Positions 1 through 22,427 of a stretch of DNA of 64,000 bases are shown here, piece after piece. The stretch's first letter is position 1. The number at the start of each line of letters is the position of its first letter. Made by a program: the position numbers and the translations under genes. Origin of the DNA: Stegostoma tigrinum (taxonomy: Eukaryota); assembly GCF_030684315.1 (NCBI RefSeq), contig NC_081378.1, positions 16,856,575 through 16,920,574 on the forward strand, in the 5' to 3' direction. Below the pieces are notes generated by a model. It had not been told where the DNA came from and did not search any database. It saw only the letters and a list, made by a program, of their open reading frames with translations.

Positions 1-761
1 TGTTTCCCTTTTATTTTTTAAAGTATCATCTCTGCAATGTGATTGATATCCTGTACATGAGGGTTTTTTTTGATTGACAGGGGACATAATTCTAACGCTG
101 GATTATGTCTTACACATTAACCTATCCTGCCACTTATTTTGAGTAAAGGTTTTGTGCTAAAATAAACGGAATATTTTCATTTTATTGAAGAAGCATAGTG
201 CAAAATCGCTTTAATTCTGAATAATGTGCAAAGGGAAATATTTTGCCATTTTGTTGATTGAATTTAAACATTTATATGTTTAACGTATGTTCATGTGTGA
301 CTCATGACCTGGGGCTTCATTATTAGTACATTTGTCCTGTGATGTTTATAGCAAATCCATCATTAAGTGTGGGTGAGACTTACAGCAGACTGTGCCATCA
401 AACTATGTATTTTACAGCAATCTAACCAAACAGTAAGGCAAACAAAGTGAATTCAGAAATACTTTTCAAAAAAAAAAAATCGCCATGAGCTATATCAACA
501 AGACCGATAGCAAAGAAATGCAGTCACACATATCAGTAATTTCCAGGCATAAATGATAGGAGAATGTATAAATTATCTCCGCGACTGGAATGTTAAATAG
601 TGCAGACATATAAATTCATCAGGACAGAACTGTGGCAGAAAATGTATGAAAGAAGCAAGCGCAGCAAAAGACAGTACAGGACAAAGCACCCAAATGCAAG
701 ATTTTATTCCTTGCAGATTATAAACCCGTTACTTTAAATTCTTATGAATAATATTACTCAC

Positions 762-2499
762 AAAACAGTTTTGCACTTGAGTAGCACGTCCTTGAGCTGT
801 TTTATTCCATCATCCCCTATGGTACAGAGTCTTAAATCCAATTCTACCATAGCAGAATGACAGAGACAGTAACATAATGCAGCGAGGTCTAATGGGCCCA
901 GAGAAATGTTGAAAAAATCTATATGCTTGAAATGAGGAGATACCTCTGTTGTTACAGTTGAATCATGCAGTTCAAAAAGACAATGCATTAAATTCAGCAG
1001 CTTGGACTTCTTGCAACCTTGTTCAAGACAGTTTTTGAACCAAGTCACTAGGGCTCTGGCTGTAGGCTGAGTGAGAGAAGCACTACAGTTCCATAATTTA
1101 GTATCTCTTCTTGCTTTTAAGGAGCCCATGAAAAGCCTTGTAAAATTGTATAGTGCCTCTGTACGTTCAGGCTTAAATGATCTCAAATAGTATTGACTCT
1201 TTTGATTTTGTGGCATTCTCCCAAAACACCAAAGATTCAGACTTTTGACCAATTCTTCAGCATCATTTTTCAGTGATGTTGCACAATACAAAGCTGCAAA
1301 ATATTCCTTTAGGACAACATGGCAGAACTCAAATATATTTTGATCTTTATACTTCTTTTCCAGGATTACATTTGAAAAATACTTCGAAAGAACATCTGGA
1401 TCTATCCCATAATTATGCAGATCATCTATTTTCATTTCAAGTTTCCCTGACAGCAAATTATTGAAGGAGAGTTCCCCCAATTTCAGGATAGTGTCTTGAA
1501 GCAATGTGCCTTCCAGTTTAGTCTCAGAGTTATCAATAGTGACCAATGACTGCTTGTCTGTCTTGCAGTGAACTAGGCTGTAAAGGAACTGCAGCAGTAC
1601 TTCACTGTGTGTCACTGGCACATCTGCCATCAAAGTCTGACTGCAGTTACATCTGTCCAAAATACTGCACAGGATATAGCTGTTGAGGGGATTTGACACC
1701 AGGCAGTTGATGGTCTCATGTTTGGTCATGTATTCATACATTCCTACTGCTTTTTGATTTTTCTGACAGAACACTTCACAATATCTTCTCAACTGATCAC
1801 TGGTAAACCCATGGATAACAAGGATGCAATCAAAATACTTCTTGTGAAATTCAAGTTGCTCAGTATTCCAACGGGAGGTAACCAATACCTGTGCTGTTGA
1901 AAGGAGATCCCCTGCAATGAGACTGTGAACAAGAACATTTACTTCAGCCTCAGTGTCTAGGTTAAAACAACCATCTGGTGGATTATTTTGCAACCGATGG
2001 TTGAATTCATCCAGTCCATCCAAAATGATCAACACATCTTGAGGGTTACAGAGAAGTTCCGTTAGAACTGATGACAATGACTCACACTGCTTCTTAAGCA
2101 GTTTCTGTAGAGTGGTCTTTCCTTCAACTTCATTTAAGTCACAGAATCTGAAAACAATGATGCACCTTGGATGACATAGTTGAGATTCTGCCCATGCTTG
2201 CTGGATGCTGGCTACAGTCCAGCTTTTCCCCACTCCTTCGTCACCTATTAGCAGGACTCGCTTTGAAGGGTAGTCTACTTTCTGTGGCAATGACAGCAGT
2301 TGTACAGCTTTCACTTCTGACACAAAATCCGAAGCAACTGTCCCCATAATGTCATCCAGAGCTGTGATTTGTTTCTTTGGAACAATAATACTGATAGTTC
2401 TGTCAAGTAAGCTATAGGCTTTGGACTTCCCATGTGACACCTTGTCAAGAAACTCTGTTTGATTCTGCAATATGTACTTTTGGTAAACTTGAACGGCAT
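762..2499 (-). CDS. Gene A: large NLR exon (NACHT, HD1, WHD, HD2, first LRR), NLRC3/NLRP-like
   Basis: Open frame with Walker A GDEGVGKS, Walker B LIILDGLDEF, sensor-1 LVTSR, the GF motif, SNPL, FEFCHVVLKEYFAALY, LLNLMHCLFEL and an RI-type LRR start (LDLRLCTIGDDGIKQL). Acceptor ttccttctag|AT at 2499 (phase 1, extending the ORF by DAVQVYQKYI). Donor TT|gtgagt at 762/761 (phase 2). Remaining LRR exons probably lie outside the window. Confidence 0.93.
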
Positions 2500-4334
2500 C
2501 TAGAAGGAAGCGGATGAAGTTTTAGTATACAACAGGAAAGTGTTTCATTCAGAAACAGGAACTGGGCATTCAACCAATTACAAAACCAGCTTTTATAAAT
2601 GTCCACCTCCCTTTCCTTTAAATTTTAAACATTTACAGCATTTATATGCTCCTTTTCAGTATTTAATACTTGGGGCAGGATTTTAACGGTCAAGTGGGAG
2701 CAGGAACTCAGATATATGGACCCATCATTTCCTTACACTGTACTATCTATTTAGAATTTGGATTCTCATTTAATGTAGAGCTAATCATTTTACTAGTGCA
2801 TCCACGGGACAATTTCTTGAAGGATAAAAATGTTTCCGGGTGCTATCCTTGTCTTGATGTGGTTCCTCATCATCTGTCAGTAACACTGGAAGCAGGAAAT
2901 TTCAACACAGGGATTCACTAGCTCTTCTCGCAGAAAATAAGATCCTTGTGGGCAACAGAAACTATTTGTTGGAATTATGTGCCAAGGTTCCCATCACAAA
3001 ATGACAGTTGATCTGTAGTGAAGCTGCTGTGCAAACAGGTGGAAAACTGGTTTTCAACAGTCAATTTTGGTGACCTTGCTATATGGCCATGTTTGTGGCC
3101 AACACCACCAATAGAAGAAGCAGCGCTTATGCACAATCACAGAATTATTTTTAAATTTCTACATGCGGCAAACTATAAACAAACATAAAAGAGGTCATCA
3201 AGGCCAGATGAATACATCTGCATTTGAGTAGAATTGTTCCAGAACACTTGTGTAAGCTTAACCTTTCTTTCCTGTTACCAAAGATCTGCAATGTTTCACA
3301 CAGGCAGTAACAAACTCCTATCTACCACCATTTTAAGAGTAGTTTTGGTCGGTGATTTCTTTAGCCACTTTTTTTTTCCCTCGTCACTTGATGTTAGACA
3401 AACACTGCATTGAAGTACATACTCTGCTTGTCTAACGTAAAGTGACAATTGAGAGAGTATTAGTCACTGGAAAAGTCACTTCCTAATGGTAGGATATCAT
3501 GGATGCCATTACGAACAAACAGGTTGATCATTAATTAATGGCCGTGCCCTATCTCTTGTGTTGGGAACACACTCCAGTTCCTATATTGAGGCAATTTTCC
3601 ATGACCTCTAATAGATGATTTACTCCAACACCAAAAGATCAACACTGTCCCCTTTGCACAACATGGACAATTTGGGCACTCAGCACTTAATGTCATTAAT
3701 AACTTGTTATTCATCATGGAAAAGATCATCATGGTTTCAAAGCCTCAAAGTTCAGTCCTAATTTATGTCTGCTGGCAGTGATGGAAGATGCCGGAAGCAC
3801 AAGGATCTAATGTTAAAATGGTGCAATGTTTAAGCTTCACACTGGTACTCCTTAATAAGTAGTTCTGGAATTATTTTTGAAAGGGAGCATGTAAACTAAG
3901 TCAGACTTCTCAGAGTAGTGTGGGAAGAGGCATCCACGTAATATTATCACAGTTTTAAAGTACCACCTCCTTCCCTATTCACCCATTAACAGGACTCATT
4001 CTGGACGAATTATAGAAATGGTTTATATAAAACCATTTTATAGGTTACTGGTCTTTCACTGTTTCCAATGCACTTACATGTTTTATCTATCTTGTCTATC
4101 GTCTTTAATGTATGGAGATAGTGGAATCCATGTTCCAAATTTACTAAATGATTAAAATTCTATTCTTTCCTGGCTAAATTACAAAAACAAACGTTATCAC
4201 AATCCTCGGAAGATTAGGTTGGCTTTTTGGTAGAAATGGATCAAATAGTTAACAAGAATACCAGACCTGTTTTGTAATTAGCTGCAGTGACATGATATAT
4301 TTTAGAACTTAATAAGAACACAAAAGTTCATTAC

Positions 4335-4364
4335 CTTCTACAGTGTTTCTCAGCAAAGCCATTG
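4335..4364 (-). CDS. Gene A: 30-nt micro-exon (T)MALLRNTVE(D)
   Basis: Strong acceptor (T-run, ccag|) with a ctaac branch point upstream, and donor GAAG|gtaatg. Phase 1-1 and stop-free; its terminal G joins the NACHT exon AT to form GAT. Confidence 0.72.
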
Positions 4365-4404
4365 CTGGAAAAAAAAGATAAGCTTCAGTTAGTTTCAGTT
4401 CAGT

Positions 4405-4532
4405 TTCAAGCCCACCGACTCCCACAGCTACCTAGATTCAAGCCCACCGACTCCCACAGCTACCTAGATTCAAGCCCACCGACTCCCACAGCTACCTAGA
4501 TTCAAGCCCACTGACTCCCACAGCTACCTAGA
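4405..4532 (+). repeat. 4 x 32-bp tandem repeat at the 5' junction of the Penelope copy
   Basis: Unit TTCAAGCCCACCGACTCCCACAGCTACCTAGA starting at 4405, 4437, 4469 and 4501, with one substitution in the last copy. Confidence 0.95.
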
Positions 4533-5664
4533 ATACACATCCTCCCACCCTGCCCCCTGCAAAAATTCCATCCCCTATTCCCAATTCCTTCGCCGCCGCC
4601 ATATCTGCTCCCAGGATGAGGCATTCCACTCCCGCACATCCCAGATGTCCGCGTTCTTCAAGGACCACAACTTCCCTCCCGCAGTGATCCAGAACACCTT
4701 TGCCCGTGTCTGCCGCATTTCCCGCAACACATCCCTCAAACCCCACCCCCACAACCACCGCCCTAAAAGAATCCCCCTCGTCCTCACATAAAACCCCACC
4801 AACCTCTGGATACAACGCATCATCCTCCGACACTTCCGCCATCTACAATCCGACCCCACCACCCAAGACATTTTTCCATCCCCACCCTTGTCTGCCTTCA
4901 GGAGAGACCATTCTCTCCGAGACTCCCTTGTCAGCTCCACACTCCCCTCCAACCCCACCACACCCAGCACCTTCCCCTGCAACCACAGGAAGTGCTACAC
5001 TTGCCCCCACACCTCCTCCCTCACCCCCATCCCGGACCCCAAGATGACTTTCCATATTAAGCAGATGTTCACCTGCACATCTGCCAATGTAGTATACTGT
5101 ATCCACTGTACCCGGTGTGGCTTCCTCTACATTGGGGAAACCAAGTGGAGGCTTGGGGACCGCTTTGCAGAACACCTCCACTCGGTTCGCAATAAACAAC
5201 TGCACCTCCCAGTCGCGAACCATTTTAACTCCCCCTCCCATTCCTCAGATGACATGTCCATCATGGGCCTCCTGCAGTGCCACAATGATGCCACCCAAAA
5301 GTTTCAGGAACAGCAGCTCATATTCCTTTTGGGAACCCTGCAGCCCAATGGTATCAATGTGGACTTCACAAGCTTCAAACCCCCCCTCCCACCACTGCAT
5401 CCCAAAACCAGCCCAGCTCATCCCCGCCACCCTAACCTGTTCTTCCTCTCACCTATCCCCCTCCTCCCACCTCAAGTCGCTCCTCCATTTCCCACCTACC
5501 AACCTCATCCCGCCTCCTTGACCTGTCCGTCCTCCCTGGACTGACCTATCCCCTCCCTACCTGCCCACCTATACTCTCCTCTCCACCAATCTTCTCCTCT
5601 ATCCATCTTTGGTCCGCCTCCCCCTCCCTCCCTGTTTATTTCAGAACCCTCTCCCCATCCCCCT

Positions 5665-5696
5665 CTCTGATGAAGGGTCTAGGCCCGAAACATCAG
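5665..5696 (+). ncRNA. Minimal type I hammerhead ribozyme motif (Penelope family 1)
   Basis: CTGATGA-A-GGGTC-TA-GGCCC-GAAAC-ATC (GAAACGTC in other copies). A further copy is at 10971-10998; degenerate copies at ~28609 (+) and ~22490 and ~24525 (-). Confidence 0.65.
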
Positions 5697-6884
5697 CTTT
5701 GTGCTCCTGAGATGCTGTTTGGCCTGCTGTGTTCATCCAGCCTCACGCTGTTATCTAAGCTTCAGTTAGTTCTGCTTCTCAAGGGTGCACTGTTTACTGT
5801 TGGTAGGTGTAGGAGTCACAAACTTACTGAGCATGTTTTTCTATAAGGGCTTTGGGACTCCACAGTTGAAGTCAAAAGGGTCTGATAAGACTGCACTCTT
5901 AGGGGCCATTCACCCAGCTTTGATTTTCCCAGAGTTGTCCAATTGATAACTACAGGATTGATTTGCTATCCAATTGGAAACAACAGGTCAGTTGTCACAA
6001 CTGGAGGCCTATAAGAGGCCTCTGCCATGGAAAAAGCAGCACGATACCTTTACTAATAAGTGAGCGAGGGCGTGCCCCAAGGTATTCATCTCCTCACCCA
6101 ACCCACCAGTTGCTCAGGGCCTTTCATAATACAATTTGTTTAAGTTGTAGAGAGGGGACATCCATCTTGGGGATGCCCTCACTCTCCAAATCCTTAAAGT
6201 TTTATGAAAAGCCCTTTGTAACTAAACTCCCAATGTGGGCAGTGTAGCCTGTGTCTCTAGGTGAAGTCAGGCAGGCTGGAAAAAGCCTCCGGCTGGTGCA
6301 GAATGCTGGGCTGGCCTGTAGGAATGTCAATGGGAGGTGGGTTGGTGATGGGAGAACATCATGTTGGCCAGCAGTGACATTTGCCTGCCTCTGCACGCTC
6401 AATCACTGGGGGAGGGCTAAACCTTCAGGCTACTACTGTATATTTAAAATTAAATCCTGCACAGAATATTCAATTCAATGTAATGACAACAAATTTGACA
6501 ACACTGTCCATAAATTGCACTCAATCAAATTGGATCTCACCTTTCTTGGCTGATTGCGAGTTGTGTCAAGTTTTTTTAAGAGAGGGTTTTTCACCACAAG
6601 GTCAAGTGAGATTTCTTACCTTACCTTACCAAACTTGCCTTTTCAAATACCCAACCCATCCCAATGGCATCCCTGATTTTGATTCTAGCCCTATCTCACC
6701 ACACCGCCTTCCTGGAACAACTCACCATTCACCACATGTCTGCCAAAGAGCTAGCATCTCTGGTGACTGTGCCATGTTAGAAAGGCCACTGTGCACCTGG
6801 GCAAAGACTAGCGTTCTGAAGCTGCCCTGCTCAGTTATGGGTAGAATTTGAACATGTTGGAGAAGGGGCAGATGATGCTGTGAT

Positions 6885-7075
6885 TTGCTGATAAGGACCT
6901 GGAGGTTCTGTGGAAGAATGGTCCACAGGAGGAGCATCCTCTTCCTGAAGACCAGCACAGGGAGCCACAGTGCCAAACCTTGGCATCCTGGTCCGAGGTT
7001 GTCACCCGGGTCAGTTGGCGCAGTCTTGATAGTGAAGAGGGGCAACCAACAGTGACACAAAGTCAAATGACCCTC
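6885..7075 (+). mobile_element. Degenerate Myb/SANT-like coding remnant, probably PIF/Harbinger-derived
   Basis: Frameshifted translation DKDLEVL...RRSILFP...WSEVVTRVS resembles Harbinger-associated Myb/SANT proteins; highly decayed. Confidence 0.35.
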
Positions 7076-7482
7076 TCCACTCTGCTAAAGTGAATGTCAC
7101 ACTTTGTCTCTGCTATTGCACCCACTTTCCACCAAGGATCAAGCTCTAACACTCTAATTACTGCAAGCAACATTTTTCCTCACTTACTCTCATTTCCTGC
7201 CCAGCCTCCCATGCCGCTAATCCTGCACAATATCTAAACTGCCTAAGCATTCTCTTGAAAAACTTCACCAATTTCCCCCAATACCTGCACCAGCACCAAC
7301 AGCATTGCCACCCATTTTCAGCACACTCCATCCCTCCCTTTCTCTTGACACAGGCCTCCAGAAAGCTCGAATGAGTAGTGAGCTCCACAACATTAGATCC
7401 AAAGTCCTCATGAGAGTGAGATGTACCTTTTGCAGAAGACTCAGATCACTCATGCATTTTTACAACTAACGTATATTTTTGA

Positions 7483-8128
7483 CCACTCTCACCTACATCA
7501 AAGACATTTCCGAAATGACTGCCAGACTACCTGGACCTCTTGGCATCATGGTAGCCCACAAACCCACCAACACGCTAAAAGAGCAGCTAATGAACTTAAA
7601 AGACCCTATACAGACAACAAACAAAACGAACGTTATCTACAAAATACCTTGCAAGAACTGTGACAAACACTCCATTGGACAAACAGGCAGAAAGCTAACC
7701 ACCAGGATACATAAACATCAACTAGCCACAAAAAGACATGACCCACTATCACTAGTATCCTTACACACAGATGAGGAAGGACACCACTTTGATTGGGACA
7801 ACACATCCATCCTAGGACAAGCCAAACAGAGACACGCACGAGAATTCCTAGAAGCATGGCATTCCAACCGGAACTCCATCAACAAACACACTGGCTCCAA
7901 ATCAATCAACCACCCTCGGAGAAAAAGAACAGGAAATGACATCACCAACCCAAGGAAACCTAACCAGATAAATAGAAAGCGAGACATAACACCAGCGCTT
8001 TGTTGGAGGCTCACTGATGAGGTTACCTAGAATGGTGACGAAACGTCTGAAAACTAACCTTCCAGCTCAGCAAGCAAACTCACATCCAGAAACTCAACCT
8101 GAGCTACAAATCTTCTCAAAACTCACTA
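7483..8128 (+). mobile_element. Penelope-like element, family 2 (5'-truncated)
   Basis: GIY-YIG NVIYKIPCKNCDKHSIGQTGRKL.TRI.KH. 12-bp TSD GTATATTTTTGA at 7471-7482 and 8129-8140. Confidence 0.9.
8005..8063 (+). ncRNA. Intact minimal type I hammerhead ribozyme motif (Penelope family 2)
   Basis: TCA-CTGATGA-G-GTTACC-TAGAAT-GGTGAC-GAAAC-GTC-TGA: conserved core, 6-bp stem II, palindromic minimal stem III, and stem I TCA/TGA extended by GGAGG/CCTTCC. Confidence 0.75.
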
Positions 8129-10780
8129 GTATATTTTTGAATTTATAAAAAAGAAATCCATGTCCTGCCAACTCAGTACAAACACTCTTCATTCCACTGC
8201 ACTCTCAGAGTAACCTTGCAGTCAGTCTCATTCATTGTACATGACTTCTAACCAGTGGCAGCAACATGTTCTCTGTCTTTTGTCTTGCAGATACCAGCAC
8301 AAAGTTCACCATAGAACAATACAGCGCAGAACAGGCCCTTCGGCCATCTCCATAGAGAAATGGCTGGCTCGGCTGGAAGCCACTTTCCCAACTGAAGATA
8401 CTGACACCTCGTTGCAAATGTCGGCCTTAGAAAGTCTGGAACACCTGCTGGTGAGAACCTCAATGCAACAGCTGGCTGAAGCAGCCCAGACCCTTGGCAT
8501 TCAGAGGACTGTAGGAGACCAGGTACCTGCTCAGCCCCAGGTAGAAGGAGAACTTTTGATGTTGATTATCAGGAACATTATCTACATGTGCAAACAGTAT
8601 CAGGAACAGCAGCAAAGTATGTGGGTCACAATAGCCCTCAATGCCCAAAAACATCAGGAGTGCAGCTATGCAGGAGATTGTCTGGCTGCCTCTATGGACA
8701 GGTTAGCAGCTGAAATGCAAAGTCAGGTCCAGCACCCTCTGAGTGTGCTAGAGAGGTGTACTCACTTGCATTCCAGCCACTAGCCCTCAAAACTGAAGGC
8801 ATGGCAACAGGTGGATGGAAAACCTGCCAAACAATTCAGGTGTCCCATCCTTGAACGGGAACAGGGCAGTGCCAGGAGGCACTCAGCTGGAACAGGTACC
8901 ACACACACACAGGCACCTCAGAAATCTCCTCCCAAAGCACTCCAGAAGTAGACTCTCCACCTCCACCCAACCTGCACACCCTTTGACCCTTGGAAGTGGA
9001 AGTCAGGGAGGGTCAACTTGCCCCTCGCAAGTAAACTCTTAGCTTGTCTGGGCCATTCAGACATAAACTCACCCAGGTTCACCTGACCAAATCATCAGGA
9101 CCACTGAGCTCCACTGCTAAGCAGGATCCTTCCACTCCTCCTGCAGAGCCAAGGATTACACAGAGACATAGTGGCAGGTAAAGAAAGAAGAAACGTATTC
9201 AGGGCTCTTTGCTGGGGCAAGTGACATTGCAAGTGCGTGTAAAGTCTCACATTTGTATAATTTTCATTGTTCAGACACTACATCTTTCTTTGAATAGCTG
9301 TTTAGCCCTGAATACAACTATGCCAGCATAAGGACTAACTTCACATCTACATAGGATGTACAATGGAGGAATATGTGTATTGACAGCCTGCTGTGGTATT
9401 CAGAAGCAAGATGAACAGTGTGTGTAAAGGGTAATGGGTTTTGCTGAATGGCCCCTTGTCCTAAAACATCCCTATTCTTTCCCCAGCCTCTGTGTCCAAT
9501 AAATGTTTTTGTGAATGGTTGGTAGGTGACATCCAGGCAGGAAGGTGTGCAGCATATACAGGGAGCCAATGCATTAGGGTCCTCCATGACCCTACCCAGT
9601 CTCAATGCAGTTGCAGTCATTTTCTTTCCCATTGTGGACTTCCAATTTTCACCACAATGGAAAGAGGCAGCAGGGTTGATGGTGTTCAGGCTCCCAGCCT
9701 GTCTGTTCTCTCTTGCAAGACCAACTGCATTTTTTAAATTGTTTTTCTTCATTTAACTTTTGAATCAAATTCATCTTTTCTTCTTTCTCCAGCTGCAGTG
9801 ATGGAGAGAGAGGTTGTAGACAGCCGCTGAGTGGTAGTCATGTCCTTTTCTAATGGCTGTGGCAGTTGTGGCGTGAGCAGCTGTTCCAGCATGGATGAAT
9901 TGGGGTCTAATCTTCTGATGTTTTGGTGAGGTGTGCAGTGGCAGTGGCAGGAATGATCACCCAGTCCGTAAGGATTAATTTGGATGGTCAATCGCTTCTC
10001 GGAAGTTGAGACGGGCCCGGTCCTCAACAGTTGGGACAATGAGATTGTTGACTTGCTCTCGTTCAGACATTTCATCACCATGCTAGGTAACATCATCAGT
10101 GAGGCCTCTGATGAAGCTATGTTGTTCTACTCTGCTTGGAATTCATACTGTCCAATCAGTTATGGCAAGTTGTGTCATTTCTGGTTCGGTTCTGATTGGA
10201 TTTGTATATGGGGTCCAGTTCTATATGTTTGTTGATTGCATTATGGGTTGAGAACCATGTCTCTAGGAATTCTTGGGCAAGTCTATGTTTGGCTTGGTCC
10301 ACTATGGTTACGTTATCCCAGTTAAACTGAAGGCTGTCATTGTCCGAGTTACTGATATTAAGGAAAGTTCACAGAAAAGTACAGCACAGTACAGGCCCTT
10401 CAGCCCATGATATTGTGCTGTGGAATAATCCTAATCCAAAAATAAAATAACCTAACCTACATTCCCCTCATTCACTGCTGTCCATATGCACATCCAGCAG
10501 TCGCTTAAATGTCACGAATGACTCCGCTTCCACGACTACCACTGGCAAACTATTCCATGCGCTCACAACTCTCTGGTTCATTGTATCATTTTGCTGCTAG
10601 TTTATGTGTTTCCTTCCTGTCTGTCCAACATAATGTTTGCGGCAAATGTTGCGTGGTATTATGTAAACTACATTGGTTCTGCATGTTGTGGGTTAATGCA
10701 ATTTACAAAATACCATGTGACAACTGCCACAAACATTATGTCGGACAGACAGCAAGGAAACTAGCCATCAGAATACACAA

Positions 10781-11975
10781 ACAATTTGTCAGACATGACC
10801 TCCCTTTGCAGTTCCAAGTATTCAGAAACCTCATCCTTCACAATGGACTCCAAAATCTTACCCACAACTGAGGTTAGGCTAATAAAATGTGAGGCTGGAT
10901 GAACACAGCAGGCCAAGCAGCATCTCAGGAGCACAAAAGCTGACGTTTCGGGCCTAGACCCCCACCCTCTCTGATGAAGGGTCTAGGCCCGAAACATCAG
11001 CTTTTGTGCTCCTGAGATGCTGCTTGGCCTGCTGTGTTCATCCAGCCTCACATTTTATTATCTTGGAATCTCCAGCATCTGCAGTTCCCATTATCTCTGA
11101 GGTTAGGCTAACTGGCTTGTAATTTTCCATCTTTTGCCTTGCTCCCTCTTTAAACAGGGACATCATGTTAGCAATTTTCCAGTCCTCTGGGACCCTCCCT
11201 GACTCTAGTGATTCTTGAAAGATCACCACTAATGCCTCCACTATCCCTTCGGCTATCTCCTTAAGAACTCTGGGGTGTAGTCCAACTGATTCAAATGATT
11301 TATCCACCTTATCAGGCCATTCAGTTTTTCTAGCACCTGTTCTTTAATTTCATTCCGAGCTCCTGACAATCCCTGAACAGGTCCTCTTTCCTAATCTTCC
11401 TATGTTATTTGTTTTGGCGTGGGCCACAACAACTGGATCCTCCCCTTCCCTCTCCCTCTCCAATCTTCTTTCAAGCTGGTCTGAAATATCTCTTACCATG
11501 GCACTGGGCAGGCAACACACCATGCAGGACTCTCGATCCTGCTTACAAAGGATACTATCTATTCCCCAGATTATAGAATCCCATACAACTACCACTTGTC
11601 GTTTTGTTCCCTCCTCTTGAATGGCCTCCCATGCCATGGTGCAGTGGTCAGTTGGCTCATCCTCCCTACAGTCTTTTCCTCATCCACACGGGGAGCAAGT
11701 ACCTTGTACCTGTGGACAAAGTCAAGAGCTGAGGTTTCTCTGATCCTGACTGCAGGATCCCTCTACCTGCCTCACTTGCAGTCACCTTTACTGTCCCTGG
11801 CCACTAACCAAATTTGCATACTTAATCTATAAGGTGTGGCTGCCTCCTGAAACGCAGCATCCAGGTACTTCTTCAACCGCGCCACCCTCCCCAGGATGTG
11901 CCACAGTGTTTGAAACTCAGATTTCAGCTCGACAACTCTGAGCTAAAGTTCCTTGAGCAACCAACACTTGCTGCA
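10781..11975 (-). mobile_element. Decayed CR1 LINE fragments (ORF1 esterase and RT pieces)
   Basis: WDSIIWGID...VCCLPSA (SGNH-like ORF1) and LHPRVLKE...VPEDWKIAN...YKPVSLTS (RT N-terminus). Confidence 0.75.
10883..11097. mobile_element. Penelope family-1 mini insertion made of two inverted tail copies
   Basis: Arms ~10883-10961 and ~10979-11058 are near-perfect inverted repeats. Flanked by TSD CTGAGGTTAGGCTAA and nested in a CR1 fragment. Confidence 0.8.
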
Positions 11976-12176
11976 TAACAAAATGTGGAGATGGATGAAC
12001 ACAGCAGCCCAAGCAGCATCTTAGGAGCACAAAATCTCACGTTTCGGGCCTAGACCCTTCAGGCCCGAAACGCCAACTTTTGTGCTCCTAAGATGCTGCT
12101 TGGGCTGCTGTGTTCATCCAGCTCCACATTTTGTTATCTCGGATTCTCCAGCATCTGCAGTTCCCATTATCTCTGA
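11975..12176. mobile_element. Penelope family-1 inverted-tail mini insertion
   Basis: Two inverted copies of the same tail, flanked by the direct repeat ACTTGCTGC. Confidence 0.75.
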
Positions 12177-12588
12177 ATACTTGCTGCTGGTGTGGTCACC
12201 GTCATTCACAATGGGATCAGCCAGCTCCCACATCATACAGCTAAACACATCACCTGTCCAGCCATTTCTACTTAGTTAACTACTTTATTAAGTTAAATAA
12301 ATTTATTTATACTTCTTTGCCGTGTTCTTTCTCAAATCTAGATCAAATTTCCTATCAGCCACAGGTCATGTCACTCAGGCCCCACCCAACTTTGAGATTA
12401 TTAAAAAAAATGTGGAGCAGCAATACTGTAAAATTTACTGGGTAACAGTTTACTGCTCAGTGAGTCTGAAGCAAAAGGTTCATTTTCATTTACGCTACAA
12501 ACTGAACAATACTATCGAGTAGTTGCACTTCTCATGGATACTAAGCCATAGTGCAATTCTGGAATTAGGAGCTGACTTAAATTCACAA

Positions 12589-12791
12589 NNNNNNNNNNNN
12601 NNNNNNNNNNNNNNNNNNNNNNNNNNNNNNNNNNNNNNNNNNNNNNNNNNNNNNNNNNNNNNNNNNNNNNNNNNNNNNNNNNNNNNNNNNNNNNNNNNNN
12701 NNNNNNNNNNNNNNNNNNNNNNNNNNNNNNNNNNNNNNNNNNNNNNNNNNNNNNNNNNNNNNNNNNNNNNNNNNNNNNNNNNNNNNNNNNN
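12589..12791. other. Assembly gap (203 N)
   Basis: Run of N. Confidence 1.
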
Positions 12792-13201
12792 AGTCTCAGT
12801 GCTGTTTCCATTTGGAAATCTAACCTTAGAATTTATTAATGTTGGTCAAAGCAATCTTCTTCCGTGAAGCTATGCTTGTAATAGAAATTTAGCCTAAGAC
12901 ACCCTTACAATAAGTTAACAATCATATCACAGAACATGCATTAGGAGGATTCATTTCACACATCCTGTGCCTGTAGCATTGTCATTTTTTAAATAAATAT
13001 GCGTTCCATATGTTAATATTGTTTCTAAGGTTCAACCTTAAGATATTAAAAGAAGAGTAAATTCACTTCTGTGTCAACAAGCTGTAGCCTTAAATATTAA
13101 ACTTTGTAATTGTTGTGGAAGGTTCTTCCAAAGTATCAAACCTCAGTTATTGAATGAAAATCGCTTGGCAAGTGTTTAATTTTTCTCAACATTTTACTCA
13201 C

Positions 13202-13357
13202 TCTCATCAGAACTTTGTATCTTCTTTTGCACTTTCGAAAATCCAACTCCAACTCCAATTAAAACAACCAGTACTCCACATATGAATACAGATACACAAT
13301 TCGTTCTTTGTCTGTTTAAAGCTGCATTATCATCACTTCCAGTAACCATTGGTTTAT
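13202..13357 (-). CDS. Gene A: stalk, transmembrane and juxtamembrane exon
   Basis: Acceptor aaatatcctag|AT, donor GAGA|gtgagt, 156 nt, phase 1-1. Encodes DKPMVTGSDDNAALNRQRTN-CVSVFICGVLVVLIGVGVGF-SKVQKKIQSSDE: a hydrophobic span followed by basic residues, with no stop codon. Confidence 0.85.
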
Positions 13358-14666
13358 CTAGGATATTTAAAAGAAGTATAAAATTACAGTTAAATCACTC
13401 TATTTACAGCTGAGGTACAACAATCAATCATTCTTCCCATGGAATGAGCTATCTTAGACAGCATGTTAACTATCCTCTGATGTCACAACAGTGAAATCTT
13501 GAACTGAAAAGCCAATTCAGAATGTCATCTTAGTAAAAAGAAAGCAATGATTAGGAACAGTCACTCAGTAGCTTGTAAAAGGATTGACTGACACTAAAAA
13601 TGCCTGCAGTGTTCATTTAGGAGACTGGTACTTGTTCCAATACCATTGCCCCAGACAATTTACTTGGAAGTAAACAAAGTATTGTTGTGGATTTGAAGCG
13701 CTATTTAAATGGATACTCATCACTTGTCCATTTGCTGCTGCAGTTGAGAAGAGCACTTCTGAAACACATTGTAAGACTTTCTTACACAGTAAAGTCTTCA
13801 GTAATTTTATATCAACATTATTCAAAAGAATTCCCTGAGGACTTCACCTAAAAAGTTAAGTGCTCTGACAGTCTTATAGGAGTCAGCAGCAGTAAGGGAG
13901 TACCTGGTCAGGCAAGCTTGTTAGTGATTTCAACTTGTTTTGGGCAAGGAATGGGAGAAGGACATGATACTATGCCAGAACAGCACTGCCCACTGCAGGA
14001 GAGGGGGACGGGGGCAAGGAGGGTCAACTTGTGCCTGTGTCCTTGGATACAGTGCTTTTTTCCTTCTCTGGACCTCCCCCAACCTCAAGTATGCAAGCAA
14101 GATCTGTGCACACTCTTCTTCACATTTTGACGCATCTTATAACATGCTAATGTGTATCTACCAGAGCACAGGCCTTCATCGTAACTGATTCAGAGGAGTC
14201 CACAAAATCTTCTCCATCGAAATCCCATGTACTTAGCACCTAAGTGCTAAATCTGAAGAAATCTTCTTTACTGCCTCCAGACAAATTAAATTATGGTAAT
14301 AAGTAATTAGGATTAAAATTTGCACTAAACTCAGGCTCCAAATAGTTGTGCCATATTTCCCGAGCATCCATTTAGCTTCAGTTTTCAGTTTTTCTCTAAA
14401 GTAACAGTTAAATTTTTTGCACCACTGGATAGTTGAAGTATTAGAATTTAGGATCATTAAAAAGTACCAGATACCAATTTAAGGTCTGCAGGCTGCATCT
14501 AAATGTAATGATATTTCAGTAAGATCTACATACTACAATTAATTGTATCGTGGCATTAGACTGTGATTTATTTTTATTCATTCATTCATGCTCTGGTCAT
14601 CTCTGCTTCATTGTGTTGGTCTGAAATGTGTTTTACGCTAAGAAGTCTAACAGTCGTTTGATCATA

Positions 14667-15644
14667 ATAGAACATAGAACATAGAACATTACAGCACAGT
14701 ACAGGCCCTTCGGCCCTGGACGTTGTGCCGACCTGTCATACTAATCTCAAACCCATCTAACCTACACTATTCCATGTACGTCCATATGCTTGTCCAATGA
14801 CGACTTAAATGGACCTAAAGTTGGCGAATCAACTACCATTCCAGGCAAAGCGTTCCATGCCCTTACTACTCTCTGAGTAAAGAAACTACCTCTGACATCT
14901 GTCCTATATCTTCCACCCCTCAATTTAAAGCTATGCCCCCTCGTGCTCGCCGTCACCATCCGAGGGAAAAGGCTCTCCCTATCCACCCTATCTAACCCTC
15001 TGATTATTTTATATGTTTCAATTAAGTCACCTCTCAACCTTCTTCTCTCTGATGAAAACAGCCTCAAGTCCCTCAACCTTTCCTCGTAAGGCCTTCCCTC
15101 CATACCAGGCAACATCCTAAATAATCTCCTCTGCATCCTTTCCAAAGCTTCCACATCCTTCTTATAATGCGGTGACCAGAACTGTACACAATACTCCAAG
15201 TGCGGCCACACCAGAGTTTTGTACAGCTTCACCATAACCTCTTGGTTCCGCAACTCGATCCCTCTATTAATAAAAGCTAAAACACTGTACGCCTTCTTAA
15301 CAGCCCTGTCAACCTGGGTGGTAACTTTCAAGGATCTGTGTACATGGACACCGAGATCTCTGTGCTCATCTACACTGCTAAGAATCTTACCATTAGCCCT
15401 GTGCTTTGCCTTCCGGTTACTCCTACCAAAGTGCATCACCTCACACTTGTCTGTATTAAACTCCATTTGCCACCTCTCAGCCCAGCTCTGCAGCTTATCT
15501 ATGTCTCTCTGCAACCTACAGCATCCTTCGTCACTATCAACAACTCCACCGACCTTAGTGTCGTCTGCAAATTTACTAACCCATCCTTCTACACCCTCAT
15601 CCAGGTCATTTATAAAAATGACAAACAGCAGTGGACCCAACACC
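14667..15644 (-). mobile_element. CR1 LINE 3' fragment
   Basis: [15 protein letters not shown]...KFADDTK and LEYCVQFWSP; (TTCTATG)n-type tail at 14667-14688. Confidence 0.92.
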
Positions 15645-16743
15645 ATTCAGCTTACACTATATAATAATTTTGAATGCCTATGTATACTAGACTTTAAATT
15701 GTAATCGAGACCTTAATACCTCCCCTTTTCCAAACAAATCTAATAAAATCCATAATATTTCCTCAATTAATTATTAGGAAATGCCTGACCACCAATGCCC
15801 ACCACCAGCTCAGAAGCTTCACTGAATAGCTTCTGGAAAAGGTAACTGCAGCATAAATTGTCAGGGAGTTAGCAGGATGATTGTGAGGGTCTGATTTTCC
15901 CCTCAAACACAATTACCAGAAGAAAGGAATAAAAGGGCAAGGAGATTGCAACATTGGCTCTGTGCCATTTTATTGCTTGGGATTCTCGGCTTTCCACTCA
16001 GATTATGGGGTTTGTTGTACCTAGGTTCATATTAATAACCAGCAATCCTATCTTATTCTCTTCCAACATCAGAACAGCAGCTTCTTTTGAAAAGAAATGG
16101 GCCTCAACTAACACCCTACCTCTGACTGGAGGTTAGGAGGCAACAACATCCTGGAAGGTGGAAATAAGCAAGTCTCTCTTCGTCCCTGATGGTGGCACAA
16201 GGATCAGAGTCAGAGGTCATTCAAACTAATTTGGACAGCAAGATGATCTTGAATTTGACAACTTTCCACCATGCCCATCAGATTTGGGCTTTTCGGTTCA
16301 TTAGCTTTTAAATGTAAGGCTTGTGCAGCTGTTGATTAAGTCTTGTTAATGACCTGACTAAAATATCAGACAGTTTCAGGCGAAGTTGGGCAGAACACTT
16401 CAAACCTAAATACAAGGTTAAAGGCACCAAAAGGTATTCTCAGATTAAAGAAACTAGGGACCTGAGACAAATAATTCAAGTGGACAGGATAATTGATTGT
16501 TAAATGTTTTACTCACAGTGATGTGAAATTCATCTCCTGCATGGCACACTTGTAACTGAATACACGATCCAATTGTACCAGCCTAACAAGCTCCATTCTC
16601 ATGAATCTCCCTGATGCATGACCACTTTAAATATATCAAAGATTTGCACAATTTTGAGATGGGGATTCTCTGCCCAAGCACAATCCCCTCAACAAATTAT
16701 GAATGGAATTTTATTTACTGCTGGGAGATATCTACGTGCTTAC

Positions 16744-17091
16744 CATATAATTTCAGTTCCACCAAATTCTCAATGTAACCTTTTCCATCCTCTTGAATCA
16801 CGAAGCAGGTGTAGTTCCCTATATCTGATGTGGTTGCTCTTTTTAATCTGAGAGAAGCATTCCCATTGGGAAATTCTTGGAGAAACAGTTTAGTCCGTCC
16901 CCTGAATGCTGGGTCCTGATACTCTGGATGGTTTTTCTCATTGTAGAAGCTATGAACCACTTTTATACTGGTTGTCCGCTGCCAGGTAATAACAAGCTGC
17001 TGCAAACTGAATTTGGTTGCAACAGTAAAAATGCAGGGCAGTAAGATGTCTTCACCTGAGACTCCTAAGATCTGGATGAAGGATCCCTCAC
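16744..17091 (-). CDS. Gene A: IgV exon, B7/butyrophilin family (CD276/HHLA2/VTCN1-like)
   Basis: Motifs GEDILLPC, WQR, VVHSFY, QDPAFRGRTKLF, GNASLRL and DIGNYTCFV. Acceptor tttcactag|GT, donor TATG|gtaagc, 348 nt, phase 1-1. Confidence 0.92.
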
Positions 17092-19038
17092 CTAGTGAAA
17101 ATATAGGACATACAATGTACAAAAAAAAGGATGAAACAAGAAATGGTCATGTTCCCCATTCAGAGCATTCATTCCAAGTGATGTACATTAGTTCCTTTTG
17201 GGAATTTCAGCAAAATGTACAAGATAAAGTTGTAAAAGCTCTCCCCTTCCTACGCAAGTCAAATCCAATACGCTTTTACAACCCTGCCTAACTGTAAAAT
17301 CGTGATTACTTAACAGTAATACCTGCACCAAAAATATTTGCATTGTGAAGTATTTCAGGATTTGAATGCAGATTGCCACTTTTCTTTGTCACATCTGGAA
17401 ATTAAAGTACATCAACACGTGTTCAAAGATAGGGTGTAGTCCTCATCATGTGGTAGTTCTTACCAGCAGCTGTTTTTTGCTGATAGAAGATAGAGGAAGA
17501 CCACATGAAGAGTTCCCTAACAGAATGCTTCTATCACACCCTACTGAGATCAATATGTTCTGTGCCAAATGTCCATTTGTTCTCTGGTACCAGTGAACTG
17601 CCTTCCACTGTCTCAGGCTGTAAGTTTTTCCTGGCTATTTAGCTAATGTACCATATCTAAACCATTTTCTTTATAAATTTAATATGCCACCTTAAAATTA
17701 TATATGATAGTCAACAACCTATTTTAAGTTTGTTTGACCGTGGAATCCCAAATGTTACATGAATGGCCTGTGTTTTCTTACTATGCGCAACAGGCTAATG
17801 CATTTGCCCACACAAGCAAAGTCATTGTCCTCTAAAACTCTTAGTATCTTTGACATTTGGGATTCCTGAAAAGAAGTAACGTATTGCTATTTAATCCAAG
17901 TTTTTTTTTCCAGATTTGTGTTTAACTTTTTAACATATAGCACCATTGTTCATGTGCCATTAATACTGCTTTCCTTTCAAATGAAAGAATTTCAAATTGC
18001 ACTAACTGTTTTTCTACATGTCTATTCCACAGCTTAATCTAAAACTAATTCCCATTTACCTTAATCTCTCTACAGGCTTATAGTTTTCATACCTGTCTTC
18101 CCTCTCTACAGGGTTACTAATTTCATATCTGTCTTCTCTAGATTCCCATTCACAGTACATGTTAGTGTGGTGTATAATCTGATTTATATGTAATACCATT
18201 TATTGTATGTTTGGGTTCTTGGCTTTAAGTAACCAATCTGTGGGTTTTCTGTGTGTTAAAAAATTAATAAGCAACTTATGTATTTGTTTTTTTTCAGTAA
18301 TGCAGTTTTTGAAGCCTGGCTTTTTGTACACTGTTAATGAATTTTTGATTTTCTTGGTTTGTTTTGGATTCAGCAACATAAATAACGAAGCCTCGAATTT
18401 GTTAGAAACTTTCGGAACTTGTTTTTTTAAGCTTAAGGGAAATACCATAGCTTTGGCAGGCAGATATCTGGTTTTAGTTTTCTTTTGCGTGTGGAAATCC
18501 TGTAAAGTCCTTGAGTGGCAATACAGCCTAGAAGGGAAGGGAAGGACATCGGGAAATTGATATCCTTACAGTATGAAGAGCTAGTGTTAATTAACCAAAC
18601 AGAAGTGTTGGAATAAAACTGTGAAGCAGTTACATTCAAGCTATGGTGGATGATAGTGCAAGATAGAAGCTCTCTATAGTTCTAGTCAGTAAATTGAAGT
18701 CACAGCAACTTAAACCTGCCTTAGTGTGTGATACAGGAGCTCTGATGTGTGTATTGTTTAAAAAAAAGCTGTTTTATTTTCTTTTTAACTTATAAAAAAA
18801 GTGTTTCGGGATTAATGGGATTATACTCTTACTGTGTGTTTAAAAACTTTGAATTTGTGTTACAAATAGATGATTTGGTTTATTCATTTTTATCTTTTGT
18901 TAGTAAACTTTTTGTTTTATTGTTAAAACAAGATGTACAGTATTGCATGCTTATGTTTCAGCAAGACATCACTTTGTTAAAACCAGACAGTCAATCACAT
19001 ACTAACAGAAAGGTCCTGAAAAAAGTCAAGGCACTTAC

Positions 19039-19099
19039 CCAAGAAAGGCTGCTGAAGGAACAGAAATAACCACAATGTGATGTACAGTGGGCTCTCCAT
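19039..19099 (-). CDS. Gene A: signal-peptide exon MESPLYITLWLFLFLQQPFL(G)
   Basis: Acceptor tttttatttttcag| at 19102, strong Kozak GCAATGG, hydrophobic core, and a perfect donor TTGG|gtaagt in phase 1 matching the IgV exon. Confidence 0.88.
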
Positions 19100-20551
19100 T
19101 GCCTGAAAAATAAAAATTCATTGGAACAAAATGAGTGATTAAATTATGTTTCCAAACAGCAATTCAAGATTTGTAGCAAGTGTGTGTCCAAAGTGACTGA
19201 TGATAGAAAAAAGTGATAGGTGCTTCACATTGGCAAATTTCACTGGCACCTTCAGTTAAAGAGTTCATTCAACCTCAGTTGATTAGCTGCATCCAAACTG
19301 ATCCTCCTTTTTTTTGCATTAAGATGATTTCTCTCTATTCTCTTCATCCTATCCTTTAACATCTAGACTAGCCCTCATCCTTTTTATCTCTCCAAGTGCC
19401 CAGGAACATTTAGTTCCCAATCTTGATCACTTCACAAATCACCTCTTTGGAATGGTTAGTGGATTAAATCAATTCATTTCTTGGTTATTAACTTGTCCAA
19501 TTTGCTGTAAGTCCTTCACACATTCGGATTAAGTGCCTTTAGCTTTGATTTTATTTCTATTTTTTTCCTGACAAAACCTTAGACACCAGTACTGTTTTAG
19601 TTTCGTTACTCTTCGTAACTTTTTGAACCACAGTCCTTATTTTTACTTAAAACAAAGTGTAACTCTAGTCATTTAGGGAATGCTAGAGAACATTTTAGTT
19701 GCTGCTTTGAATTTTTCCTTTCCTGAATCCTCCTACTTGGCCTTCATTATTTTAAATCTACACGCTACAGTCTTACTTCTTAGATTTGCCAGGATTCCAG
19801 TCCCATCCTGGTTCAAGTGGTGCCCATTGCAGAGGAACAGTTCCCTCTTTCTTGGTGCCAATAGTCCATGAAGCAAAACCCTTGCTACCACATCACTCTT
19901 TCAGCACTGCATCTAAAGTTATAATCTGTTTATTCCTGTGCTAAGTGTCACGTGGTTCCGATGGTAAACCAGATTCGACCTTTTAAGGTTTTACTTTTCA
20001 AATTGAATCCTATCTTGTCAAATTCTCTCAGCATATTATTCTTTATTCTTCCCGTGTTATTGTTTCCTACAGAACAAAGACAATTGGATCATGGTCTTCA
20101 AGTTCCTCTTTAGCCATGACATGATGTCTTTAATTCCCCCCCACAACAGAAACCTTGGAGCTCTAGATCATAGAGTGTCTATTTCCCAAGTTAGTGTGTC
20201 CCTAATCATAAACTTCTTTTTATTCCTCCCATCCCCACTTGAATATGCTTCTGAACCATCATGCTACTATCTGTTTCCATCCACATGTAATTGTTCTTAC
20301 TCACACAGCAAGTAATTTGCACCTGCTCATCAAAATGAAAGGCTACAGCTCCTCCATCAACGCATCCCATACCAGTCTGACTTGCAATCACACCCTCCCG
20401 CCCCGAACACTAACCAACTCGAAAGGTTCACTTAAGATAAGGAAAATGGCTGTCTCGAGGAACAAATGATCCAGGTAAATCCCTCACTCACTAACGTTCT
20501 GCAAGACTTGCAGGTCAGACTCCACCTCAAGAATTCTGAGTCGAAGGCCTA

Positions 20552-21990: not shown

Positions 21991-22427
21991 CATGTTGAAG
22001 ATATGACCATCTAAGATCACAGTGAGCTCTGCAAGTCCACCTTGCTATGGCACAGCATGCCCCTTAGTATGTCACATCTGTCTGGCTGAATCCAAGTTTA
22101 GAATCAAAGAAAACTATTCTTTTTAGATCTCTCATCTGACTCAGTTTGTGCTGTCTTCAATTATAGAAAAACTCACTAACTAGTCATCAATCACCACAAC
22201 AAGATTTACTACTGGAATCTGCAATAAAAGACCACCTTTCTTAAAATGAAAAATGTCTTATTGTTTCGTCATCTGTTTCATTGACTCTTGAAGCACCTTG
22301 GAGGGTCCTTCATGACAGTTTTGAACAGACACACAATAGTGATCCATGGCTTCTTGAACTGGCACTTCTTGGCAATTGACAGCGCTTAAGAAGTTCCAAG
22401 TGCCTGAAAGGTTCAACAAGCAGAAGA

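Follow-up and report, generated by a model that had tools for sequence, protein, structure and literature searches.

A minus-strand gene of the zebra shark, Stegostoma tigrinum, encodes in one reading frame a signal peptide, a B7-like immunoglobulin V-type (IgV) domain, a transmembrane (TM) segment, a NACHT NTPase and leucine-rich repeats (LRRs). The 64,000-nt stretch of DNA analyzed here (the window, whose positions serve as coordinates throughout) holds the 5′ four-fifths of this one gene. The best explanation overall, and one that we regard as likely, is that its product is a type I membrane protein in which a B7-type IgV ectodomain is joined across the membrane to a cytosolic NLR; as to the direction of signaling, we lean only slightly toward inside-out. 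The argument draws on the exact correspondence of the exons to a RefSeq protein, spliced contigs from related species, the recurrence of the same order of parts in cartilaginous fishes and a salamander, and an invariant acidic dileucine motif that straddles the junction between the TM exon and the following micro-exon.

Exon structure of the gene

All five exons in the window lie on the minus strand. Exon 1 (19039..19099) carries the start codon and signal peptide (residues 1-20 and the first base of G21) and ends at a GT donor, and exon 2 (16744..17091, phase 1-1) encodes the B7-H3/B7-H4-like IgV domain (residues 22-136). The stalk, the TM helix and a basic stop-transfer tail (residues 138-188) are encoded by exon 3 (13202..13357), which is followed by a 30-nt micro-exon, exon 4 (4335..4364; residues 190-198), with AG/GT borders. 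Exon 5 (762..2499; residues 200-777) supplies the pre-NACHT linker, the NACHT NTPase with its Walker A (2245-2222) and Walker B (2032-2006) motifs, the winged helix, HD2 and the first LRR. The acceptors are of the polypyrimidine-AG type, the donors read GTAAGT, GTAAGC, GTGAGT, GTAATG and GTGAGT, and the phase-1 translation of each exon is free of stop codons. These translations are exact substrings of RefSeq XP_048410387.1 (“NLRP1 homolog isoform X1,” 990 aa; hereafter isoform X1), and the split codons GGT, GAT, ACA and GAT give G21, D137, T189 and D199, as in that protein. The original prediction, made from the letters of the window, had called five minus-strand exons with canonical splice sites and phase-1 junctions; every border proved to be at the position claimed, and the 777 stop-free codons obtained by joining them are exactly residues 1-777 of isoform X1, which the window encodes with exact identity of the exons. 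One point to be corrected is the end of the reading frame at 762: this is a donor site (GTGAGT at 761), and the gene runs past the left end of the window, outside which lie the codons for the last 213 residues, with their additional LRRs and C-terminal helical domain; of the LRRs, the first alone falls within the window.

A tblastn search with isoform X1 recovers a single copy of every exon in the window. The sole run of Ns in the window is an assembly gap (12589..12791) that begins 411 nt beyond the donor of the TM exon, within intron 3 (13201-4365), and overlaps no exon. Since the gap lies inside the intron and leaves the exons untouched, the continuity of the frame across it is not at issue. 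In isoform X1, as in the 17 aligned orthologues, the segment encoded by the TM exon is followed by that of the micro-exon with no residue left unmatched. An alternative exon may be hidden within the gap.

Transcript evidence for a single gene

RNA-type contigs from relatives were aligned to positions 1-6000 of the window, a stretch outside which the junction 13202->4364 between the TM exon and the micro-exon falls. In one close relative (run X1), a contig of 3568 nt covers the whole NACHT exon at 95.6% identity. It contains the joint 2499->4335, whose ends read CT..AC on the plus strand and hence GT..AG in the sense of the gene; 28 aligned letters fall on the side of the micro-exon, and depth over the introns is approximately zero. 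This contig reaches 727 nt upstream and 1103 nt downstream of the NACHT exon. Exons 1-4 need 595 nt, which leaves about 130 nt of the upstream part for an untranslated region. The same 2499->4335 joint recurs in a second organism (run X7), so the junction 4335->2499, which the original prediction had proposed to look for in RNA, is present in contigs of two close relatives. Within the aligned stretch, none of the contig pieces from these two runs falls in 2500-4334 or 4365-6000, which argues against a separate promoter or first exon for the NLR part in this interval. Two further runs (X10 and X11, 100% of words) are DNA, with a contig spanning 1-4429 together with its introns.

The entire arrangement is seen in a skate Logan contig of 3341 nt (P0008) that holds a complete 982-aa protein running from the signal peptide through IgV, TM and NACHT to the LRR. 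A reading frame of this length on a contig of this size leaves no room for introns, and the contig must therefore be spliced cDNA. Shorter skate contigs, of the cluster P0089, have exons 1-4 spliced together. The exons therefore form a single gene, as had been predicted for the IgV-TM-NACHT combination; RefSeq isoform X1, the orthologous models, the spliced contigs and the motif across the exon 3/4 junction all speak for this.

The ectodomain, the membrane anchor and topology

The product of exon 2 is recovered by the Pfam V-set profile (E=8.5e-12). Its best matches in the PDB are CD276/B7-H3 (1e-30, summed over repeated IgV domains) and VTCN1/B7-H4 (3e-17), followed by MOG and BTN3A, and the E-values across these B7, butyrophilin and MOG matches range from 1e-30 to 1e-11. 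The modeled fold agrees with this affinity, matching MOG (Z 17, root-mean-square deviation [rmsd] 1.8 over 113 residues) and BTN3A1 (Z 16.4). Among the canonical IgV residues, W57 and C116 are invariant and C40 is nearly invariant in the 17-sequence alignment. In two models from Amblyraja radiata (P0032 and P0034), a serine replaces this first IgV cysteine (LLPS, not LLPC), while Leucoraja keeps the cysteine; the substitution may mean that the disulfide within the domain is lost, or it may be an allelic variant or a product of sequencing. There is no membrane-proximal IgC domain, as the IgV exon directly precedes the stalk/TM exon and no second Ig domain is found in the chondrichthyan orthologues; the salamander member, from Pleurodeles, has two IgV copies.

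The signal peptide has a short hydrophobic h-region (best 9-residue Kyte-Doolittle [KD] value 2.63), and all orthologues begin with a hydrophobic N terminus of the signal-peptide type followed by G-[ED]-G-S-F. The TM segment (residues 158-176) has a mean KD value of 2.72 over 19 residues, and the residues that follow it are basic and rich in lysine. Every orthologue carries at least one N-x-S/T N-glycosylation sequon in its ectodomain. An AlphaFold model of isoform X1, built on a shallow alignment with a mean predicted local distance difference test (pLDDT) value of 61.6, shows the IgV domain (pLDDT 70-86), a long helix at 148-180, a disordered linker, and HD2, LRR and C-terminal regions with pLDDT values of 80-90. 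The signal peptide, the IgV cysteines and tryptophan, the sequons, the basic tail and the modeled helix together make it very probable that the protein has a type I topology with a single TM helix, its IgV domain being luminal or extracellular and its NACHT module cytosolic.

A dileucine motif across the exon 3/4 junction

Beyond the TM helix and its basic stop-transfer stretch, the residues E188-x-x-x-L192-L193 match the consensus [DE]xxxL[LI], the classical acidic dileucine sorting signal, which is bound by the adaptor protein (AP) complexes AP-1, AP-2 and AP-3. E188 (13205-13203) is the last full codon of exon 3, and L192 and L193 (4356-4351) lie in the micro-exon. Being split over exons 3 and 4, the motif exists only in transcripts that join both; isoform X2, from which the TM exon is missing, does not have it. 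Across the 17 aligned orthologues, K182, E188, L192 and L193 do not vary, although the juxtamembrane region around them is only 31% identical between shark and ray. The equivalent motif is ERAALI in the chimaera Callorhinchus and DEEALL in Pleurodeles, and every full-length member has a [DE]xxxL[LI] motif approximately 10 to 15 residues past the TM segment.

The motif and its position speak for the exon 3/4 splice, for a tail that faces the cytosol, and for trafficking through the endocytic or endolysosomal route. The features expected of an AP sorting signal are all present in the sequence and conserved, namely, a signal peptide, one TM segment, a positive-inside tail and a motif at least 6 residues from the membrane. 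On the strength of these sequence features, AP-adaptor-dependent endocytic or endolysosomal trafficking appears somewhat more probable than its absence, and the motif would point to endosomes as much as to the cell surface. It fits inside-out and outside-in signaling alike.

The predicted cytosolic NLR part and its C-terminal bundle

Exon 5, which is 100% identical to the RefSeq Stegostoma protein (isoforms X1 and X2), matches the Pfam NACHT (1.4e-23), NOD2_WH (1.1e-05) and NLRC4_HD2 (2e-14) profiles and one LRR (LRR_6). The NTPase appears intact: Walker A (G284-S291), Walker B (D359-E363), the sensor-1 R408 and H592 of the winged helix are invariant in 17 orthologues. LRR_6 is found in isoform X1 and all 17 aligned members, and the structural matches of the LRR are ribonuclease inhibitor (RI) and the NLRP1 LRR, at Z 19-20. 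A family profile search recovers rabbit NOD2 at 5.8e-49 and NLRP9 and NLRP3 at about 1e-38, and NOD2 and NLRP3 are also the structural matches of the model by Foldseek and VIA. The nearest proteins outside the family are coelacanth, amphibian and teleost NLRs with approximately 30-37% identity, and at this level of identity of the best non-family matches we rejected orthology to any mammalian NLR.

No CARD, PYD or BIR domain is detected with Pfam in isoform X1, in the 17 orthologues or in the open reading frames (ORFs) of introns 3 and 4. The prediction that no CARD or PYD exon intervenes between the two halves of the gene thus holds, as the 10 minus-strand ORFs of these introns lack any Pfam domain. 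There is likewise no SPRY/B30.2 Pfam match in isoform X1 or the 17 orthologues. The N terminus consists instead of the signal peptide, IgV domain and TM helix, and a flexible linker of approximately 80 residues precedes the NACHT domain.

At the other end, the short LRR is followed in the AlphaFold model by a three-helix bundle (897-912, 919-933 and 942-967; pLDDT 80-86). The NLRX1 fragment 3UN9 tied as the best VIA match (Z 21.4 over 227 residues, model residues 675-968), with a high rmsd of 6.9 Å, and in sequence NLRX1 is no closer than other LRRs. It is, however, the only LRR match that extends to model residue 968, the others stopping near 891-897, and NLRX1 is also the structural look-alike of the C-terminal part in the protein Atlas (TM 0.66). 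The protein Atlas feature search gave no usable match for the C-terminal domain, and for the N-terminal part it returned B7/PD-L1-like clusters only. The bundle has no Pfam match even at E<=1, NLRX1_C included. Its identity to the zebra shark bundle is 47% in the chimaera, 40% in the coelacanth and 30% in the salamander. In light of the model, if any part of the protein acts in output or regulation, this bundle is the strongest candidate.

Phyletic range and selective constraint

The 18 full-length models examined from chondrichthyans show the full order of signal peptide, IgV, TM, NACHT and LRR, and so does that of the salamander Pleurodeles. Models combining V-set and NACHT come from the sharks Stegostoma, Chiloscyllium, Heterodontus, Mustelus, Scyliorhinus (2 species), Heptranchias and Pristiophorus, from the rays and skates Pristis, Rhinoraja, Narcine, Mobula, Hypanus, Hemitrygon, Amblyraja and Leucoraja, and from Callorhinchus and Pleurodeles, in which the two domains likewise stand on one model. 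This range is that of the matches listed in word-index searches that covered at most 8000 candidates; the profile run missed even Pleurodeles. The expectation that V-set, TM and NACHT would recur together in other chondrichthyan proteomes is thus borne out in sharks, rays, skates and a chimaera. A search with the IgV exon against 1.84 billion representatives returned mostly multi-Ig proteins, with NACHT in 1 of the 150 best matches, this one (P0006) being the family's own cluster.

Between shark and ray, identity is higher in the folded domains (IgV, 0.55; NACHT, 0.66; HD2, 0.70; LRR, 0.67; C-terminal bundle, 0.49) than in the connecting segments (stalk, 0.26; TM, 0.22; pre-NACHT linker, 0.34). 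A hydrophobic 19-mer (KD 1.7-3.3) is nonetheless present at the equivalent position between IgV and Walker A in all orthologues, and the persistence of a TM segment despite only 22% identity there counts for conservation of the membrane anchor itself. The original proposal of a type I membrane protein with an intact NLR ATPase as its tail is in accord with this conserved order of parts, the TM segment of every orthologue and the invariant Walker motifs. From their levels of conservation, both IgV and LRR seem unlike rapidly diversifying pathogen-binding domains, and conserved partners would be expected for each.

Related fragments are seen in other lobe-finned lineages. The coelacanth Latimeria model XP_014348506.1 (P0026) has a partial NACHT-HD2-LRR-C-terminal bundle followed by IgV-TM. 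This order would result if a model ran from the 3′ end of one family member into the 5′ exons of its neighbor, so that the coelacanth may have such genes in tandem, as a pair or an array. In the lungfish Protopterus (P0180/P0194) and the tailed frog Ascaphus (P0153/P0193), there are “CD276-like” proteins of 213-233 aa with a single IgV domain 49-50% identical to that of the shark, the corresponding value for the fused salamander form being 47%. The lungfish IgV-only protein has a TM segment and lacks the dileucine motif. These lungfish and tailed-frog proteins may be what is left of B7-NLR family members, or incomplete models of them. Judged by its distribution, the family would date back at least to the common ancestor of the cartilaginous and lobe-finned fishes.

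Isoforms and short products

A second RefSeq isoform, X2 (XP_048410389.1, 938 aa), is isoform X1 minus exon 3, the TM exon being skipped in frame. Among the models examined, this skipping is annotated in Stegostoma only; the Amblyraja isoforms retain the TM segment. A different kind of short product is seen in the skate Logan cluster P0089, with 5 proteins of 214 aa on 8 contigs of 1.1-1.7 kb, which comprise the signal peptide, IgV, TM, the ExxxLL motif and the micro-exon, followed by 12 residues encoded by intron 4 and a stop. They may represent a true short B7-like isoform or unspliced RNA. In the zebra shark window, read-through meets a stop after 2 codons of intron 3 or 8 codons of intron 4. 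Reading past the micro-exon donor (below 4335) gives G-N-E-L... in Stegostoma, and the Scyliorhinus canicula model P0006 has a 34-residue insertion at the same spot that likewise begins with G-N-E-L. By this comparison, the start of intron 4 seems to be conserved between two shark orders; it could serve as an alternative donor or a splicing element, or the intron could be retained.

Repeats in the introns and elsewhere in the window

The intron between the IgV and TM exons (intron 2) has a reverse-transcriptase fragment as the sole content found, in a minus-strand ORF of 294 aa (14762-15646; RVT_1, 7e-09) that has the orientation of the gene. In intron 3, positions 4400-5800 form a very highly repeated element, with a summed contig depth in the millions in the DNA runs and many internal joints, and a plus-strand ORF (4888-5544) has a weak GIY-YIG match of the kind seen in Penelope-like elements. 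Outside the gene, retroelement ORFs lie at 20848-21991 (minus strand), 36756-37967 (plus), 48107-49066 (plus) and 56591-57622 (minus), with matches to RVT_1 (up to 4.8e-28) and Exo_endo_phos (5e-19). An Rfam scan of positions 1-20000 of the window gave no match.

Relationship to known systems

The protein shares with canonical NLRs (NOD2, NLRP3 and NLRP1/5/9) the NACHT domain with Walker A and B, the winged helix, HD2 and a C-terminal LRR of the RI type. It differs from them in that a signal peptide, an IgV domain and a TM segment replace CARD, PYD or BIR, making it membrane-integral rather than soluble, and in its short LRR capped by a helical bundle. With B7-H3 (CD276), B7-H4 (VTCN1), the butyrophilins and MOG, it has in common the IgV signature (..ITWQ.., ..GRT.LF.., ..GNASL.L.. 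and D.G.Y.C), and, as in the B7 and butyrophilin genes, its leader, IgV and TM exons are all of phase 1 and its topology is type I. Unlike those proteins, it has no IgC domain and, in place of a B30.2 domain or short tail, a cytoplasmic NLR part of approximately 800 residues. NLRX1 offers a partial parallel, in that N-terminal targeting to a membrane compartment takes the place of a death fold and a helical bundle comes after the LRR at the C terminus; however, the targeting signal of NLRX1 is a mitochondrial presequence, with neither a secretory signal and TM segment nor an Ig domain. A comparable episode of exon shuffling, with TRIM/butyrophilin-type genes, gave rise to the teleost NLR-C proteins (NACHT-LRR-B30.2) (PMC2657112; PMC4852459), but in that case a cytosolic B30.2 domain was added at the C terminus and the protein stays in the cytosol.

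The closest described architecture is that of AjNLRC4 from Apostichopus japonicus (a sea cucumber), a plasma-membrane protein with Ig domains outside and NACHT inside, whose Ig part binds microbes and which oligomerizes and drives actin-dependent uptake of Vibrio (PMC8699970). At the level of the published description, it resembles the shark protein in carrying Ig, TM and NACHT on one polypeptide (PMC8699970); it differs in that it has two Ig domains, for which no B7 likeness is reported, lacks an LRR and is predicted to cross the membrane with two TM helices. The echinoderm and shark fusions likely arose independently. Full-text searches of the literature found no description of a vertebrate Ig-TM-NLR, and the whale-shark genome paper, which catalogued 43 NLRs, mentions none. 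The initial impression that no characterized vertebrate protein has this design therefore agrees with these searches, with the qualification that an echinoderm counterpart has been characterized (PMC8699970) and that the gene models are already public. The latter are known under names such as NLRP1 homolog, NLRC3-like, NOD1-like and NLRP5/6-like, which conceal the architecture; what is new here is the invariant acidic dileucine motif across the TM-exon/micro-exon junction.

Mechanism and alternative explanations

In the mechanism that we propose, a cleavable signal peptide would place one IgV domain of the B7-H3/H4/butyrophilin type outside the cell or in the endosomal lumen, followed by a single TM helix, the basic stop-transfer sequence, the dileucine motif, the flexible linker of approximately 80 residues, the cytosolic NACHT-WH-HD2 ATPase, the short LRR and the NLRX1-like three-helix cap. 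The IgV-TM module would thus occupy the N-terminal slot that CARD or PYD takes in other NLRs. The flexible linker would let a NACHT oligomer lie under the membrane with its N termini converging on a bundle of TM helices, so that NACHT oligomerization and clustering of the ectodomain would be mechanically coupled. In the inside-out direction, the LRR/NACHT part would sense in the cytosol, the protein would oligomerize, and the clustered IgV domains would be the effector presented to a conserved partner on another cell. Butyrophilins signal inside-out, and IgV domains of the B7/butyrophilin type engage receptors on other cells. By analogy with them, we lean slightly and tentatively toward this direction, on account of the position of the IgV domain in the NLR effector slot, its B7/butyrophilin type, and the shark-versus-ray identity of the IgV domain (55%) and the LRR (67%).

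Several observations weigh against this account as a whole. The junction 13202->4364 is not directly observed in this species, the contigs having been aligned to window 1-6000; the existing isoform X2 lacks the TM exon; and short skate IgV-TM contigs reading into intron 4 are abundant. The NACHT core of the AlphaFold model is poor (pLDDT <50 over approximately 171-434), and no death-fold or other known signaling domain was found. Finally, the sole characterized Ig-TM-NACHT protein that we found, AjNLRC4, works outside-in (PMC8699970). The last point leads to the main alternative, a receptor with the same topology in which the IgV domain would bind an extracellular or luminal ligand, microbial or host, cluster the protein and drive NACHT oligomerization, signaling or phagocytosis, in effect a Toll-like-receptor analogue assembled from NLR parts. 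AjNLRC4 is a precedent for microbe binding via Ig, oligomerization and uptake (PMC8699970), although this likeness comes from the published description of a protein with two TM helices and no LRR, and the invariant dileucine motif would suit an internalized receptor. Yet the shark IgV belongs to the B7/butyrophilin/MOG type, whose usual partners are counter-receptors of the host; it has been strongly conserved over hundreds of millions of years, unlike typical microbe-binding domains; and outside-in signaling would leave the conserved LRR and NLRX1-like cap with no obvious sensing role. We regard outside-in signaling as somewhat less likely than inside-out.

The short products raise a different alternative, namely, that the membrane-anchored full-length form is a minor by-product and that the main output is either a short IgV-TM protein, from transcripts that stop within intron 3 or 4, or isoform X2 with its missing TM segment. 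The in-frame skipping of exon 3 in that isoform, the skate P0089 proteins that end 12 codons into intron 4, the stops that read-through meets in the window after 2 (intron 3) or 8 (intron 4) codons, and the IgV-only relatives in the lungfish and tailed frog with their 49-50% identity would all fit such an output. However, the short contigs may be merely unspliced pre-mRNA, full-length spliced contigs exist, and the ExxxLL motif across exons 3 and 4, the linker and the NLR part are constrained together with the IgV domain in every lineage. Moreover, a TM-less form with a signal peptide would put a NACHT ATPase in the lumen of the endoplasmic reticulum, for which we know of no precedent. This alternative strikes us as improbable. 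More improbable still, and nearly refuted already, is that two neighboring genes, one for a B7-like Ig protein and one for an NLR, were wrongly joined. Automatic models can chain neighbors, as the Latimeria model P0026 evidently does, an assembly gap lies within intron 3, and, with contigs aligned to window 1-6000, the junction from the TM exon to the micro-exon is not directly seen. Against this stand the 3568-nt contig, which extends 727 nt upstream of the NACHT exon via the micro-exon and has none of its pieces in 2500-4334 or 4365-6000; the 3341-nt skate contig, which holds the entire ORF; the same join modeled independently in approximately 18 species; the invariant motif that crosses the junction; and the 10 minus-strand ORFs of introns 3 and 4, which contain no CARD, PYD or other Pfam domain. 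The single gene for a membrane-anchored B7-type IgV-TM-NLR is the account that we retain.

Implications

Vertebrate NLRs are generally taught to be soluble cytosolic sensors that signal via CARD or PYD. The protein described here would be a permanently membrane-integral NLR in vertebrates, extending such a design beyond the echinoderms and implying its retention for approximately 400 million years or more. It is possible, though we advance this more as a working proposal than as a conclusion, that it represents an ancient receptor class of jawed vertebrates in which a B7-type ectodomain is coupled across the membrane to an NLR oligomerization engine and cycles through endosomes by means of its dileucine signal. 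The names assigned automatically in databases hide this family and imply orthologies that do not exist. If the proposal is true, cytosolic NLR activation would be displayed to lymphocytes as a clustered B7-like ligand, or the reverse, and the B7/butyrophilin and NLR families would be directly linked in evolution, a link kept in cartilaginous fishes and some lobe-finned lineages, in a receptor class apparently lost in mammals. The family would also offer a natural system in which to ask whether NACHT oligomerization can pass information across a bilayer, in either direction. More generally, it indicates that three families of immune modules, the B7/butyrophilin IgV domain, the NLR and, by analogy, B30.2, recombine through phase-1 exon shuffling.

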